Positions 3,001-6,785 of a stretch of 64,000 nt of DNA are shown one piece after another. The notes beneath the pieces are model-generated. The model saw nothing but the letters and a program-made list of their open reading frames with translations. It ran no database searches and had not been told where the DNA came from. The stretch lies in sequence record MW384823.1; one strand, written 5' to 3'. Numbering within the stretch: position 1 is the first letter of the stretch; the number at the start of each line of letters is the position of its first letter. The position numbers and the translations under genes were made by a program.

Positions 3001-3587
3001 GACCCAGTGCATCTTTTCGGGCTGGGTAGGGTTGATGTCCCTACCTGCGCGGTGTTCGTTAAGGCTGGTAACGTTCGCTAAGACCTATCGCATACCCGTA
3101 AGTCGATAGTAGCCGGTTACACAAAGAACTATCCATTGGGTAGGTAACTGACCGTTCACGATCTCATTAGGTGAGCAAATAATCTATGCAAGGACTTCTA
3201 GGATTTGTGCTCGACATGATGGGTAGCTTACGCCGCCTCATCAAGCAGTTACGAATCTGGAAGCTTGCCCATTACTGGTTTACAGGCGAAAAGGCTTCTC
3301 GTGAGAGAGCCACATGCAAACTGCGTATTTACATTAGTATGTTCACGGCTGTGAGCATAGGTCAAGCCCCGGAACGATAAGCCGGTCAGCTACGCCTGTA
3401 AAATACAATCTGAAAATCATAATGGGATTAAGTTCCCAGATTTGAAAAGGCGACTGTGTGTCGTCGGCGATAACCCCCCGTCGTGGACTCGGTTATCCCA
3501 AAGGTAATGTGAAAGGGGTTGGTGCTTGGAGGCGCTAAGACCGGCGGATACGCTGGCTCAGAAGAAGAAGTCCATCAACCCCATTCT
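3001..3587 (+). ncRNA. putative large structured non-coding RNA region (about 590 nt), or several tandem small RNAs
   Basis: No credible ORF; helices 3219-3229/3261-3272, 3279-3288/3393-3402 (10 bp perfect), 3293-3311 (GTGA tetraloop), 3338-3346/3351-3359, 3469-3475/3491-3497, 3515-3524/3573-3582. Confidence 0.55.
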
Positions 3588-3642
3588 CACCTAAGTAACT
3601 CTTTTACAGAGTGTTACTTATATATGCGAAAGCGAGGTGAAC

Positions 3643-3969
3643 ATGGGAACGTATCGTGAAGGTCCTGAAAGTACGGTGACTCACCGTAGTCATGATTACT
3701 CTGTGGATGCATTGCTGGATATAGCGGAACGTCATAGCCTCGTTCAAATTCCAGTGTCTAGAATAGAATGGATTTTAAACGAGACTACGCTCGATGATGA
3801 GCGGGTTAAGAATGCAGATACGGATTATCCAATAATCGTGCTGCACGAAGGAAGTTTGTATATTGTATTAGACGGTGCCCATCGCCTTGCGAAGGCGGTT
3901 GCCGAAGGGCGGGACACCATCGCAGCCAAGATACTTGTGCCTGCGAATCTACCGAAACCGGTACGATAA
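3643..3969 (+). CDS. small ParB/sulfiredoxin-fold protein
   Basis: YPIIV...VLDGAHRLAKA signature; GAGG RBS before ATG 3643. Confidence 0.75.
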   Translation: MGTYREGPESTVTHRSHDYSVDALLDIAERHSLVQIPVSRIEWILNETTLDDERVKNADTDYPIIVLHEGSLYIVLDGAHRLAKAVAEGRDTIAAKILVPANLPKPVR

Positions 3970-3971
3970 AA

Positions 3972-4000
3972 AGTCTAATTACAAGTTTACACTGTATTAT
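3972..4000 (+). promoter_or_regulatory. putative tRNA-operon promoter, copy 2
   Basis: 19-nt exact repeat of 812-830 followed by ACTGTATTAT, ending one base before a structured RNA at 4001. Confidence 0.55.
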
Positions 4001-4084
4001 GTCGGAAACCCGATTTGATGTTGCACAGGGCGCTACGCTGCGGCGTTTGCCGGTGTGCAGGGTTAGGTCGGGATTCTGGCACCT
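4001..4084 (+). ncRNA. long-stem RNA Z
   Basis: 4001-4013/4068-4080 pair (12 of 13 positions), inner helices TTGCAC/GTGCAG and ACGC-TGCG-GCGT, 3' tail ACC(T). Confidence 0.5.
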
Positions 4085-4088
4085 ATTT

Positions 4089-4173
4089 GGCGGGTTACTC
4101 AAGCGGCAACGAGAGCAGACTGTAAATCTGTTGACTTCGGTCTTCGGTGGTTCGAGTCCACCACACGCCACCA
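4089..4173 (+). tRNA. trnY: tRNA-Tyr(GTA)
   Basis: GCAGA-CT GTA AA-TCTGT arm, variable arm GAC-TTCG-GTC, A73 plus CCA; G.A mismatch in acceptor. Confidence 0.93.
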
Positions 4174-4179
4174 AACAGT

Positions 4180-4254
4180 TGGGGTATAGCCAAGCGGTAA
4201 GGCCCAGGGCTTTGATCCCTGTATGCCTAGGTTCGATTCCTAGTGCCCCTGCCA
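4180..4254 (+). tRNA. trnQ: tRNA-Gln(TTG)
   Basis: CAGGG-CT TTG AT-CCCTG arm, unpaired 1:72, G73 plus CCA. Confidence 0.93.
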
Positions 4255-4259
4255 CACAA

Positions 4260-4481
4260 TGGTACCTGTCACAGCAGCCCTTGAGGCTTACGCGAAGATG
4301 ACTGGCAGCCTCCTTTTACCGGGTAACACATTCCTGCCAGCGTGCTATTGCCGCGAAGGTTTGTCCCCGGTGTCGTGCGTTATTCGGGTCTACCCACGGT
4401 CTGCGGACGGTGCGCTGATGTCTCGATATACGCCATAGGGCAGCCTTGAGAACTCCGTGGGATTCGGAGGGGTACCACCCA
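4260..4481 (+). ncRNA. RNA A: about 220-nt RNA with a tRNA-like acceptor stem and T-arm
   Basis: GGTACCT(4261-4267)/GGGTACC(4470-4476) 7 bp, adjacent CTCCG-TGGGATT-CGGAG 5-bp/7-nt arm, tail A-CCCA. Confidence 0.55.
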
Positions 4482-4552
4482 TTCTTGTGTTTCCTTATCC
4501 TGAAGACATTCGTAAGACAAATCCATTCGTGGTCGAGGAAACACAGAACCCA
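4482..4552 (+). ncRNA. RNA B: 13-bp stem RNA ending C-CCA
   Basis: TTC(T)TGTGTTTCCT/AGGAAACACAGAA then CCCA; abuts RNA A, 4 nt before tRNA-Asp. Confidence 0.6.
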
Positions 4553-4556
4553 TTCT

Positions 4557-4631
4557 AGGACTGTAGTTCAGTGGGAGAACGCCGCCCTGTCACGGCGGAG
4601 GTCGCGGGTTCGAAACCCGTCAGTCCTGCCA
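4557..4631 (+). tRNA. trnD: tRNA-Asp(GTC)
   Basis: CCGCC-CT GTC AC-GGCGG arm, G73 plus CCA. Confidence 0.95.
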
Positions 4632-4639
4632 TTTTCAAA

Positions 4640-4715
4640 TGCGTCTTAGCTCAGTTGGTAGAGCGCACCCCTGATAAGGGTGAGGTCACTGGTTCAAGTC
4701 CAGTAGATGCAACCA
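4640..4715 (+). tRNA. trnI: tRNA-Ile(GAT)
   Basis: CACCC-CT GAT AA-GGGTG arm, A73 plus CCA. Confidence 0.95.
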
Positions 4716-4721
4716 AACACT

Positions 4722-4799
4722 GGTGTATGTAGTTCAGTTGGTTAGAATTCCGGCTTGTGACGTCGGAGGTCGAGAGTTCAAGTCTCTCCATACACCCCA
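4722..4799 (+). tRNA. trnH: tRNA-His(GTG) with encoded G-1
   Basis: G-1:C73 pair, CCGGC-TT GTG AC-GTCGG arm, CCA. Confidence 0.95.
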
Positions 4800-4805
4800 A
4801 ACAAT

Positions 4806-4881
4806 GCTCCCATCGTCTAGAGGCCAAGGACCCCAGGTTTTCAGTCTGGTAACCCCGGTTCAAATCCGGGTGGGAGTACCA
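4806..4881 (+). tRNA. trnE: tRNA-Glu(TTC)
   Basis: CCAGG-TT TTC AG-TCTGG arm, TTCAAAT T-loop, CCA. Confidence 0.92.
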
Positions 4882-4903
4882 TGTTATCCTCACGTAAATC
4901 ATC

Positions 4904-5006
4904 GCCGGTGTAAGGAAGTGGCCAAACCTAAGTAGGTCGTGAGGTAAAAGCTCACCACTGAACACCCTAAGGGTTCCTGAGGTTCGAGTCCTCAGTACCG
5001 GCACCA
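4904..5006 (+). tRNA. atypical 103-nt Leu-like tRNA with enlarged anticodon arm; anticodon undetermined
   Basis: GCCGGTG/TACCGGC acceptor, A73-CCA, D-arm, long variable arm, TTCGAGT T-loop; anticodon loop 12 nt longer than normal, with inner GTGAG/CTCAC hairpin. Confidence 0.65.
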
Positions 5007-5007
5007 T

Positions 5008-5183
5008 GTTCTCTTGCTGTGGGAAATAGAAGCGAACGTAGAAACGCCGATTAGCTTAAAGCTTAGAGCATCTTACCCTAGCGGTAAGGCAGTAGGGGCG
5101 CAACCCGAATTCCCTATCGGCAACGGCCTGCTTGTCAGGATTAGAAACATCTACGTGGATGGGTACTTCTACAGCGAGAACCA
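5008..5183 (+). ncRNA. RNA C: long-stem RNA enclosing a tRNA-like domain, ends CCA
   Basis: Outer stem 5008-5022/5169-5181, inner helix 5036-5042/5150-5156, tRNA-like cloverleaf 5046-5121; followed by AACAGT, the same spacer as after tRNA-Tyr. Confidence 0.6.
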
Positions 5184-5189
5184 AACAGT

Positions 5190-5262
5190 GGGAGCATTGT
5201 CCATTGTGACACCGGCAAAGGTTTCGTACCTTGCGGGTTGGGCGGAAGCCCGATGTTCCCCC
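5190..5262 (+). ncRNA. RNA D: 10-bp stem three-way-junction RNA
   Basis: GGGAGCATTG/CGATGTTCCC; inner hairpins with TTCG(T) and GGAA loops. Confidence 0.5.
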
Positions 5263-5383
5263 GAACGCTGGCCTTCTGGCCAATACAGTGAAAGCTTACC
5301 CTTGCCGTTGATCACCTCTTCTGCTGCTGCCAACACACTGTATAACCGGAATCAGTCCTGCCTTAAATGGCAAGCGTTCACCC
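5263..5383 (+). ncRNA. RNA E: cloverleaf-like RNA
   Basis: GAACGCT/AGCGTTC 7 bp plus ACCC; GGCC/GGCC arm; ATACAGTG/CACTGTAT arm with large loop; TGCC-TTAAAT-GGCA arm. Confidence 0.5.
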
Positions 5384-5388
5384 TTTAC

Positions 5389-5466
5389 GTTTCCTCAAGG
5401 CGGCTTGGGGTGTTATCTCTCGGCTCTGTTGGGTAACATCGTGGTTCAACTCCATGGGAAACACCA
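5389..5466 (+). ncRNA. RNA F: remodelled tRNA-like RNA with A-CCA end
   Basis: GTTTCCT/GGGAAAC acceptor, GTGG-TTCAACT-CCAT T-arm, 9-bp central arm with 14-nt loop, no canonical anticodon loop. Confidence 0.6.
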
Positions 5467-5472
5467 AACAAA

Positions 5473-5542
5473 GACCTCTCGCGTTGGTGTGCTAAAAGTG
5501 CTTTATTGCGCTGCTAGGATGGTTCGAATCCATCAGAGGTAA
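5473..5542 (+). pseudogene. degenerate tRNA (no CCA, 6-nt anticodon loop)
   Basis: ACCTCT/AGAGGT stem, GATGG-TTCGAAT-CCATC T-arm; D-arm eroded. Confidence 0.5.
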
Positions 5543-5619
5543 GTGCACGGCTGTTAAGCTGGTTAACACCCGACTCATAATCGGATATTCGCGGGTTCGA
5601 TTCCCGCTCGTGTGCGCCC
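5543..5619 (+). tRNA. atypical tRNA-Met/Ile2(CAT)
   Basis: CCGA-CT CAT AA-TCGG arm, GCGGG-TTCGATT-CCCGC T-arm; 6-bp D-stem TGTTAA/TTAACA, wobble-rich acceptor, ends GCCC. Confidence 0.7.
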
Positions 5620-5625
5620 TATTTA

Positions 5626-5701
5626 GACTCTGTAGCTCAGTTGGTAGAGCGGATGACTGTTAATCATCAGGTCACAGGTTCAAGCCCTGTCAGAGTCGCC
5701 A
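5626..5701 (+). tRNA. trnN: tRNA-Asn(GTT)
   Basis: GATGA-CT GTT AA-TCATC arm, G73 plus CCA. Confidence 0.96.
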
Positions 5702-5703
5702 CA

Positions 5704-5774
5704 TTTTGCATTGCCCGAGTCCCGAATGACATTCCGGAAAAATATCATCCATGGTCAAGGGCAGTGCAGAACCA
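5704..5774 (+). ncRNA. RNA G: 13-bp stem RNA ending CCA
   Basis: TTTTGCATTGCCC/GGGCAGTGCAGAA then CCA. Confidence 0.55.
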
Positions 5775-5778
5775 AAAT

Positions 5779-5838
5779 CCCAGCCTTCGCAGAAAAAGCT
5801 TACCTGCATTAGCGGTCCCCTGCGGGGGTTGGGTACCA
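5779..5838 (+). ncRNA. RNA H: 14-bp stem RNA ending TA-CCA
   Basis: CCCAGCCTTCGCAG/CTGCGGGGGTTGGG then TACCA, then a T-rich tract ending the cluster. Confidence 0.5.
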
Positions 5839-5972
5839 CCTTTGTCCGTTTTGTTTTTTTCTCTTAATTGTCTGGCGATGATGGCGGGAACAAAACGGAT
5901 AAAGCCCTAGCGGGGGAAAAGCCGCTAACAACAACAGAAGCAGTAAAAACAGAAGTAAAAGCAGGAGTAGTT

Positions 5973-6785
5973 ATGTTTACTATCTTACGTAAAATCAATG
6001 GTAACCGCACACCAACCGAACACGAATCCCCAACGCTGGGTGATACGAAGTCACAAGTGTTCAAAGATGCGATGTCGCTTTTGACCGAATCCAATAACGT
6101 GCACAACTGCATGGATTCTGGGATGGATGCGAAGCCGTGGATTAACGGCAAACCCAAACCGATTGAAGAATGGGTAGAACGCTTTGAGAAAGTATTCGGT
6201 GCGACCGACGTAGACAACCAAGAGCTGGTTTCTCTGGTCAGTGAACTCGCACCGGGGATGTTTGATAAAGCGAATGCGCGTTTTGCCTCCGACTTTGGTC
6301 AGCTGCAAGAAGCCTTCCTGAAAGACACCGGACAAACCATCATCTGGAAATGTCCGAAAGGACTCCCGATTGATATCCAGTTCCAAGACATCCCCCGTCA
6401 GTCTGTTGAAACGCTCCACACAACTCTCGATTTCATCGAAGCTGGTGAATTGAAGTTTGCGGTGTTCAACAGCAAGGCGTTGTGGGATGGGTATAACTCC
6501 GCTGAACTGTTTGGCGGAGAAGCCACCGAGATTTCCTCGGTAGAACTCCAGCACGTTTACCATGACGATACGGCGATGCCGCAAGAAGCGGTACTGAAAG
6601 CCAGCCGTCGTGGTACCCGCACCATGGAACAGGTCATTGGGGTGCTTGCCTATGGCAGCTCCGAACAGCCTGACCCAACCACGGGCAATGTGCCGGTCAC
6701 CGTGATGACCTACGAGTTTATCTACCAAGGCGATGAAGTCTACATTACGAACCGCCACGGCAAGACTGTAGACTCCATCCGTTAA
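5973..6785 (+). CDS. hypothetical protein
   Basis: Start moved to ATG 5973 (GCAGGAG RBS); about 270 aa. Confidence 0.8.
   Translation: MFTILRKINGNRTPTEHESPTLGDTKSQVFKDAMSLLTESNNVHNCMDSGMDAKPWINGKPKPIEEWVERFEKVFGATDVDNQELVSLVSELAPGMFDKANARFASDFGQLQEAFLKDTGQTIIWKCPKGLPIDIQFQDIPRQSVETLHTTLDFIEAGELKFAVFNSKALWDGYNSAELFGGEATEISSVELQHVYHDDTAMPQEAVLKASRRGTRTMEQVIGVLAYGSSEQPDPTTGNVPVTVMTYEFIYQGDEVYITNRHGKTVDSIR

Follow-up and report, generated by a model that had tools for sequence, protein, structure and literature searches.

A tRNA-like, non-coding RNA conserved in the tRNA arrays of Enterobacterales jumbo phages

It has been known since the 1970s that phage tRNA clusters can specify extra stable RNAs besides the tRNAs, like RNAs C and D of T4. 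RNA C (species 1, rnaC; 139 nt) and RNA D (119 nt) are both encoded within the T4 tRNA cluster, on the tRNA strand, and both are non-coding. RNA C folds (z -4.6) with its 5' and 3' ends paired in a closing stem, which encloses two hairpins, and a T arm lies on the 3' side. The roles of the two stable RNAs are stated as unknown in a review (PMC3014915) and in a transcriptome study from 2022 (PMC9697503).

Several other RNAs share part of their design with tRNA. In tmRNA (SsrA), an RNase P-type substrate, a large insert separates both ends of the long molecule, which come together as the acceptor stem and the T arm. tmRNA further possesses a D-loop analogue, a long-range P2 helix, pseudoknots and an mRNA-like domain, and the G3.U70 wobble in its acceptor stem provides the alanine identity. 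YrlA RNAs (RF02553), which are also carried by phages, are non-coding and consist of a tRNA-mimicking module that is fused to another structured module. Finally, the mascRNA/MALAT1-type RNAs and the tRNA-like structures of plant viruses adopt cloverleaf or tRNA-like folds on which RNase P and CCA-adding enzymes act, and they do not decode.

The window that was analyzed here, a stretch of 64,000 nt, was identified by BLAST as positions 1-64000 of Erwinia phage pEa_SNUABM_43 (MW384823), a Machinavirus jumbo phage of 241,904 bp that was isolated on Erwinia amylovora, the fire-blight bacterium. The tRNA array of this phage is located at about 4089-5701, and ten tRNAs were called in the window using ARAGORN and Rfam. 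Every true tRNA of the array encodes its CCA, the spacers are short and of the AACA type, and the usual spacer between the true tRNAs of these arrays measures around 7 nt. Between tRNA-Gln (4180-4254) and tRNA-Asp (4557-4631) there is a gap of 302 nt, which is mostly occupied by an element that we refer to as RNA A (4261-4481, + strand; the same strand as both neighbours). A first-pass annotation, made from the letters of the window, had proposed that a new RNA with a tRNA-like domain resides at this position, with the architecture of a tmRNA and without its identity. None of the Machinavirus records that were examined carries an annotation over this gap, and in the record of Serratia phage Moabite a CDS of 40 codons is annotated on top of the homologous RNA. 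A scan of 3400-6100 that covers sigma-70-like promoters, as opposed to those of jumbo phages, recovered none of these, and it gave a single terminator-like site where the array ends. An internal repeat search recovered no further copies of parts of RNA A inside the array. The public runs in which the sequence occurs contain it as contigs; one assembled contig of 365 nt spans 4243-4611, and the RNA label of its source run is a guess.

We found 13 distinct members of the RNA A family, with one copy per genome in all five whole phage records that were checked. The Machinavirus copies (n = 6: Machina, Huxley, Parshik, pEa_SNUABM_10, pEa_SNUABM_6 and Salmonella phage pSal-SNUABM-04) are 93-94% identical over the whole block. 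In a BLAST search of more distant phages the match was restricted to the 3' 50 nt of RNA A, and short forms of 118-156 nt with the same ends could be read from the tRNA arrays of these phages. They are listed below:

Erskinevirus: short form in Stratton/phiEaH2 and in Asesino
Wellingtonvirus: short form in Kwan/Wellington and in pEa_SNUABM_11
Seoulvirus: short form in pEa_SNUABM_29 and in SPAsTU
Moabitevirus: short form in Moabite/Yaphecito
Unclassified phage-sized metagenome contigs (the largest 246-249 kb): shorter forms

A covariance model (R1) was built from nine short relatives alone, which represent four genera and include no Machinavirus sequence. The full model matches the window at 4261-4480 with 72.2 bits (E 1.8e-13). 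Because Machinavirus had no part in its construction, this match gives independent support for both ends of RNA A and for its membership of the family. The genes that flank the element differ between phages (Gln/Asp, Tyr/Asp, Glu/His, or a position after tRNA-Ser), and, much as a tRNA gene would, RNA A thus behaves as an autonomous module. Its distribution among related phages is patchy. RNA A is absent from the tRNA arrays of ChrisDB, Caitlin, pEa_SNUABM_4 and pEa_SNUABM_9 when these are searched with R1 with the filters off, and given that it is missing from these four related arrays, it is dispensable for this type of phage.

The conserved core pattern was found in 0 bacterial copies in a pattern scan of 185,579 prokaryote genomes. 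Likewise, a BLAST search of 50,697 phage records and pattern scans of IMG/VR and the JGI metagenomes recovered no members beyond the five phage genera and the unclassified phage-sized metagenome contigs. A comparison with Rfam 15, at gathering as well as permissive thresholds, assigned no known RNA family to RNA A or to four homologues, and the tRNA model RF00005 did not match RNA A even at E<=10. ARAGORN made no call on RNA A in its tRNA and tmRNA modes; with loosened thresholds the calls were mutually inconsistent, and for tmRNA they amounted to one inconsistent call among 14 sequences. We found no paper on RNA A in the full-text literature. RNA A is a family that has been filed in no library so far and that occurs in the tRNA arrays of SPN3US-like Enterobacterales jumbo phages, which we take to be nucleus-forming. 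It is non-coding and is conserved across five phage genera.

According to the consensus model, RNA A is a tRNA-like cloverleaf with four arms at one junction. The order is acceptor stem, D-position arm, a linker of 1 nt, anticodon-position arm, a linker of 6-7 nt in the position of the variable loop, and T arm. In the window, the features are as follows:

4255-4260 (+): 5' leader CACAAU, directly 3' of the CCA end of tRNA-Gln; putative RNase P cut at 4260/4261
4261-4267 (+): 5' strand of the acceptor stem, GGTACCT; pairs with 4470-4476, 96.7% of cells paired
4268-4302 (+): P2 hairpin in the D-arm position; base 4268-4271/4299-4302, inner helix 4276-4279/4285-4288; abuts the acceptor stem without a linker
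4303-4310 (+): box 1, TGGCAGCC; U4303 is the 1-nt linker and GGC(A)GC(C) the predicted 5' strand of a helix in the anticodon-stem position
4311-4439 (+): variable insert P3, 129 nt; hairpins at about 4317-4372 and 4375-4434 in a constrained fold
4440-4445 (+): box 2, GCAGCC; predicted 3' strand of the same helix, 6-7 nt 5' of the T stem, with the conservation pattern of box 1
4446-4452 (+): linker TTGAGAA in the variable-loop position; 6-7 nt in all members, with AA just before the T stem
4453-4469 (+): T arm; stem CTCCG (4453-4457)/CGGAG (4465-4469) and a 7-nt loop TGGGATT (4458-4464)
4470-4476 (+): 3' strand of the acceptor stem, GGGTACC; pairs with 4261-4267
4477-4481 (+): tail A4477 (A73), C4478 (C74), C4479 (C75), C4480, A4481

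The cloverleaf, including the helix between the two boxes, was obtained with RNAalifold and also when pEa29, SPAsTU, Moabite and Asesino were each folded singly by MFE, without constraints. Across the 13 members 94% of the cells are paired, compared to 80% after shuffling and 37-53% when the partners are slid, and of the 19 pairs in the model, 11 vary at both positions. The observed covariation score and paired share were reached in none of 500 shuffles. The folding energy of the window RNA is unremarkable (z -1.0) and the same holds for most homologues; given these energy z-scores, the case for RNA A rests on covariation.

The acceptor stem (7 bp) and the T arm (5 bp) together constitute a tRNA-like top half of 12 bp. 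Both had been described in the first-pass annotation, as a 7-bp acceptor at 4261-4267/4470-4476 and an arm of 5 bp/7 nt with G53, T54, A58 and C61, and both are present with exactly these coordinates and residues. In the window the acceptor stem contains six Watson-Crick pairs and U7.G66, and four of its seven pairs covary (2-71, 3-70, 6-67 and 7-66). The first-pass annotation had made its proposal dependent on the conservation of the GGTACC pairing, which is a palindrome. The palindrome is lost in nine members, which have GACAC.. with ..GUGUC instead, and the pairing is kept by compensatory changes.

At the base of P2 all four pairs covary, appearing as GTCA/TGAC, GCAC/GTGC, GTCC/GGAC, TCCC/GGGA and GTTA/TAAC among the members. 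The hairpin is 31-41 nt long and its apex differs by genus. The structured insert of about 185 nt that had been reported between the acceptor and the T arm corresponds to 4268-4452, which is 185 nt, although only two of the three helices that had been drawn within it were recovered. The pairing GTCA/TGAC (4268-4271/4299-4302) is the covarying base of P2 and AGCC/GGCT (4276-4279/4285-4288) holds within Machinavirus. TGGCAG/CTGCCA (4303-4308/4334-4339) can be found in the sequence, but in pSal04, Parshik and pEa10 it is eroded with no compensatory changes, and nothing equivalent exists in the short forms. The proposed tmRNA-like architecture had to be abandoned as well: the topology is that of a tRNA cloverleaf, with P2 in the place of the D arm and the helix between boxes 1 and 2 in the position of the anticodon arm.

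This latter helix, GGC(A)GC with GC(A)GCC and a central A.A mismatch, is likely. Its pairs would be 4304-4445, 4305-4444, 4306-4443, 4308-4441 and 4309-4440, around the mismatch A4307.A4442, and in the window it continues through the pair 4310-4439. The box 1 sequence of all short forms is UGGCAGCC, into which SPAsTU has an additional A inserted, and within Machinavirus its variation is confined to the middle two bases. Since both boxes are invariant, the helix between them shows no covariation. In Parshik, Huxley and Machina one of its pairs has become a G.A beside the A.A mismatch, and overall the helix is 91% paired. The P3 insert that caps it ranges from 28-59 nt in the short forms to 129 nt in Machinavirus. 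The base of P3 in the short forms (RGC with GCY) covaries, and the substitutions within Machinavirus leave 98.5% of the P3 cells paired. More explicitly, the Machinavirus pair 4399-4408 is seen as G-C, A-U and C-G, and in a metagenome variant the G.G mismatch 4398/4409 is replaced by a U-A pair.

The T stem CUCCG/CGGAG is invariant in 13 of 13 members and the loop always reads U-G-N-R-A-U-U. In tRNAs the D loop is docked through U55-C56. The T loop of RNA A retains U54 and A58 but lacks the U55-C56 of true tRNAs, and the D loop and the anticodon loop are both missing from the fold. Lacking both U55-C56 and a D loop, RNA A would not form a tRNA-type elbow in the usual way. Immediately upstream of the acceptor stem the sequence ACAAY is found in all 13 members, whichever gene precedes; position -1 is U in 11 of them and C in two, and every member starts with a G. 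Downstream, residue 73 is A in 12 members and U in one, and C74 and C75 are present throughout (13/13). The A73 and CC(CA) of the first-pass annotation correspond to the tail A4477-C-C-C-A4481. With its leader and its N73-CC tail, the element follows the pattern of the neighbouring tRNA genes. Position 76 is C in ten members and U in three, thus A in none of the 13, and position 77 is A in 11. As A76 is encoded in no member, a CCA end depends on trimming and repair.

Substrates preferred by bacterial RNase P have a U at -1 and a G at +1; the enzyme also recognises the acceptor/T helix and base-pairs with R73-C74-C75. The features that this enzyme reads (U-1, G+1, the acceptor/T helix and A73-C74-C75) are the conserved ones, and on that account we infer that host RNase P cuts before G4261. 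RNA A would be transcribed together with the tRNAs, in a single transcript of the array. Its 3' end would be trimmed back to CC, after which the CCA-adding enzyme may complete it, and by analogy to T4 RNA C the product might accumulate as a stable RNA. The absence of an anticodon implies that RNA A cannot decode. We consider it probable that RNA A is the gene for a non-decoding, tRNA-shaped stable RNA that is matured by the tRNA-processing pathway. For the structure and the family the case is strong, while the assignment of a function is a guess.

Some features of the conservation nevertheless bear on that function. Box 1, box 2, the terminal AA of the linker and the T arm are invariant across the five genera, and the acceptor, P2 and P3 covary. 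The fact that the boxes, the linker end and the T arm are fixed while the other helices covary suggests sequence-specific recognition, and the pattern of invariant residues suggests that the junction and the T-arm face may be recognised by a protein or another RNA. As a working model, RNA A could mimic a tRNA or act as a scaffold, and in this way engage a protein that recognises tRNAs, such as a host factor, a defence nuclease or a toxin, and the variable arm could represent a lineage-specific appendage or payload.

Compared to the systems described above, RNA A resembles tRNA in having a 7-bp acceptor that is stacked on a 5-bp T stem with a 7-nt loop. It differs in that it has no D arm with G18-G19, no anticodon stem of 5 bp with a 7-nt loop and no U55-C56; in addition, the helix in the anticodon position is capped by 28-129 nt, and CCA is not encoded, the tail being A-C-C-C-A. 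The closest analogue is T4 RNA C, with which RNA A shares the context of a phage tRNA cluster, the tRNA strand, the lack of coding capacity and a size within 100-250 nt, as well as the closing stem of both ends, the internal hairpins and the T arm beside the 3' strand. Only T4 RNA C has a canonical T arm (GGGUUCGAAUCCC), a weak and mismatched closing stem and no N73-CC tail, whereas only RNA A has a perfect acceptor stem of 7 bp, a non-canonical T loop and the two GCAGCC boxes. A search of the T4 tRNA region with R1 came back empty at E<=1, so RNA A has no sequence relationship to rnaC or rnaD, and the T4 RNA C type is a class that is defined by context and shape and no homology family. The kind of element is thus known, and RNA A adds a new family to it that is unrelated to the T4 RNAs.

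The remaining systems are more distant. YrlA ends in a Ro-binding stem and a loop closes its acceptor-like stem, whereas in RNA A the ends themselves form the acceptor stem, and the Rfam YrlA model (RF02553) matches neither RNA A nor four homologues. The mascRNA/MALAT1-type and plant-virus structures are eukaryotic or belong to RNA viruses, show no homology to RNA A and have another arm design; the corresponding Rfam families gave no match on RNA A. The pseudo-ToxI of phage phiTE is likewise a phage non-coding RNA in a tRNA region, and it has a short motif in common with the Erskinevirus and Wellingtonvirus forms. ToxI consists of tandem 36-nt pseudoknot repeats that are cut by ToxN, and RNA A of the window shows no similarity to it.

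The readings that grant RNA A a translated frame are contradicted by the variation within the family. An ATG at 4259 opens a frame of 59 codons over RNA A (4259-4438), and the 40-codon CDS in the Moabite record could be taken as a second indication that a small protein is encoded here, in this frame or on the opposite strand. The ATG is an ACG in pSal04, however, and Machinavirus copies that are 93-94% identical differ by 1-nt indels at two sites plus one of 3 nt. There is no reading frame in common between these copies and the short forms, and the variation takes the form of compensatory base pairing; we regard the chance of a protein gene as negligible. A tmRNA-like rescue RNA, which would be aminoacylated at its tRNA-like domain, engage stalled ribosomes and supply a short internal frame for the synthesis of a tag, is compatible with the tRNA-like top half with its N73 and CC, and in the Erskinevirus/Wellingtonvirus forms box 1 can be read as GCA GCC AAU AAA ..., followed by a stop 7-9 codons later. 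When reading starts at the box 1 GCA, Moabite reaches its stop after 4 codons, Asesino and pEa29 do so later and SPAsTU never does, with more than 25 codons passed in some phages; in Machinavirus every frame is broken by the 1-nt and 3-nt indels. The earlier impression that there is no recognisable tag frame holds for the family, in which the frames vary in length and are disrupted by indels. Changes of GGC to AGC within the putative frame are matched by GCC to GCT on the opposite strand, which points to a constraint on base pairing and not on codons. RNA A is also much shorter than tmRNA, with members of as little as 118 nt, and lacks the canonical T loop and the D-loop analogue. No long-range P2 helix or pseudoknots appeared in the consensus and single-sequence folds, in which the look for pseudoknots was non-exhaustive. 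Pair 3-70 is U-A in the Machinavirus copies, including the window, and C-G in nine short forms, and hence is never the G3.U70 whose absence had already been pointed out. The ARAGORN tmRNA mode (default) and the Rfam tmRNA models (E<=10) remained silent, in line with the lack of a tmRNA identity that had been noticed beforehand, and altogether a rescue RNA is very improbable.

Two further explanations accept a tRNA-derived frame and differ from our preferred reading in what they make of it. RNA A could be inert, either as a decayed tRNA gene or as a punctuating spacer whose ends help RNase P to free the neighbouring tRNAs. The patchy distribution among close relatives would fit with this, as would the other odd tRNA-like elements of the array and the resemblance of the acceptor 5' strand GACACUG to GACUCUG of phage tRNA-Asn. 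Nonetheless, true tRNAs that are spaced by around 7 nt need no punctuation, and decay would not keep the two boxes and the T arm invariant across five genera. Moreover, three other helices are maintained by compensatory change and the module moves intact between different neighbours, which makes an inert remnant unlikely. RNA A could also be a decoy on a tRNA scaffold, in which the frame gives processing and stability and an exchangeable arm mimics an RNA that is bound by a toxin or nuclease, e.g. the type III antitoxin ToxI. The constancy of the scaffold, as opposed to a P3 arm that is wholly different between genera and measures 28 to 129 nt, agrees with such a role, and the pseudo-ToxI of phiTE sits in a tRNA region beside tRNA-like pieces that end in CCACCA. 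Using the ToxI sequence from the supplement of PMC3475682, we detected a motif of the ToxI repeat, AAGUGCAGC..UAGAA, in the Erskinevirus/Wellingtonvirus forms as well (9+5 nt; shuffle p 0.00-0.02), but the window RNA does not resemble it (p 0.78). The shared 9-mer overlaps box 2 and is already explained by the scaffold, RNA A has neither tandem 36-nt repeats nor an AAAU cleavage site, and the comparison with ToxI carries a large look-elsewhere effect, with chance as a serious alternative. We give the ToxI-like decoy a slim chance. To our knowledge, no toxin partner has been described in the hosts.

In a broader variant of our preferred reading, the non-decoding, tRNA-shaped stable RNA would serve as a tRNA scaffold of natural origin. 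RNase P and the CCA machinery would be drawn to its invariant core, which would also stabilise the RNA, and the exchangeable arm in the anticodon position would carry a decoy or sponge payload, directed at a host anti-phage RNase, a toxin or a tRNA-binding factor. This is speculative and we give it a low probability. The payload would differ by phage genus and the one in the Erskinevirus/Wellingtonvirus forms would possibly imitate ToxI. If true, phage tRNA arrays would double as expression platforms for anti-defence RNAs, and the 50-year-old puzzle of T4 RNAs C and D might find an explanation along the same lines. Binding of a host factor or a defence protein by the invariant boxes, if it occurs, would add an RNA-based mechanism to the interplay between nucleus-forming jumbo phages and their hosts. 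Irrespective of function, the RNA A family provides a second, independent example of a stable RNA from a tRNA cluster, with thirteen divergent members. The division into an invariant core and variable arms, together with the precise predicted ends, makes it approachable by comparison and simple genetics, and a covariance model of RNA A would improve the annotation of jumbo phages.

Box 2 and the linker resemble GCAGC..UUAGAA, which brought up a possible mimicry of the CRISPR type I-F repeat. This reading was dropped, given that the linker varies (UUGAGAA, GUAUAA, UUUAUAA). Several other odd tRNA-like elements are present in the same array of pEa_SNUABM_43.

The tRNA array that harbours RNA A, the tRNA-shaped non-decoding RNA at 4261-4481, contains the following further elements:

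Additional RNA elements in the array (window positions)
4482-4552: 71-nt hairpin RNA, directly 3' of RNA A
4904-5006: tRNA-like element; acceptor GCCGGTG/TACCGGC, canonical T arm TGAGGTTCGAGTCCTCA, ACCA end
5186-5380: second long RNA; 3' end ...AGCGTTC ACCC TTT
5381-5466: uncalled tRNA-like element; GTTTCC...GGAAAC and ACCA, T arm CGTGGTTCAACTCCATG
5470-5541: uncalled tRNA-like element; T arm GGATGGTTCGAATCCATC, CCA not encoded
5755-5842: final element of the array; contains GGGCAGTGCAGAACC, 3' end GGGTACCACC

Ends similar to that of the second long RNA lie 3' of the RNA A homologues of phages Kwan and pEa_SNUABM_11 (..AACCGTTG ACCC TTTT and ..AGCGTTC ACCC TTTT; L003 1550-1757 and L004 1545-1655, where L-numbers denote sequence pieces from other records). 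The similarity of these ACCC-TTT(T) ends between the three arrays is suggestive of another RNA family whose ends are tRNA-like, which may be present in these arrays. In the hairpin RNA that adjoins RNA A, 4482-4494 pairs with 4537-4548 to form a 12-bp stem interrupted by a single bulge; its MFE z-score is -3.6. The stem is followed by CCCA and then by an ATTCT trailer that is identical to that of RNA A, and Asesino, SPAsTU, pEa_SNUABM_29, Caitlin and pEa_SNUABM_4/8 also retain the block, close to tRNA-Asn. Within the final element, GGGCAGTGCAGAACC resembles boxes 1 and 2 of RNA A, and the closing GGGTACCACC is like the RNA A 3' end and lies just upstream of a terminator-like T run.

Despite its tRNA-like acceptor, T arm and end, the element at 4904-5006 has an aberrant middle part. 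It was not called by ARAGORN, and its sole match was a weak one to tRNA-Sec (15.9 bits, E 3.3). In Pectobacterium phage phiTE, apparent fragments of tRNAs lie on both sides of the annotated pseudo-ToxI ncRNA (L036 1395-1510), a phage mimic of the type III antitoxin RNA ToxI. The upstream fragment is TATAGCTCAGC and the downstream one GGTCCGAGGTTCGAACCC...CCACCA; ARAGORN made no tRNA call in this region.

In Serratia phage Moabite, the RNA A homologue (L024 520-644) is overlapped by CPT_Moabite_078 (L024 502-624). This 'hypothetical protein' of 40 codons, for which a ribosome-binding site is also annotated, is probably a mis-annotation. In pEa_SNUABM_10 and pEa_SNUABM_6, tRNA-Gln is separated from the RNA A homologue by an additional, unannotated stretch of around 90 nt (711-805 in both L007 and L008), which has CCACCA at its end and may represent another CCA-ended element. 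The member at 6149-6291 of a 246-kb metagenome contig (L038) joins a Stratton-like P2 to an Asesino-like P3, which points either to an intermediate lineage or to arm exchange between copies. Finally, the P3 hairpin ACC-GUA-GCC-UUCG-GGC-GUAGA-UGGU of Stratton (L002 1478-1504), also found in Kwan, pEa_SNUABM_11 and L016, carries a 3-nt bulge followed by G.A, an arrangement that we take to be reminiscent of a kink-turn.
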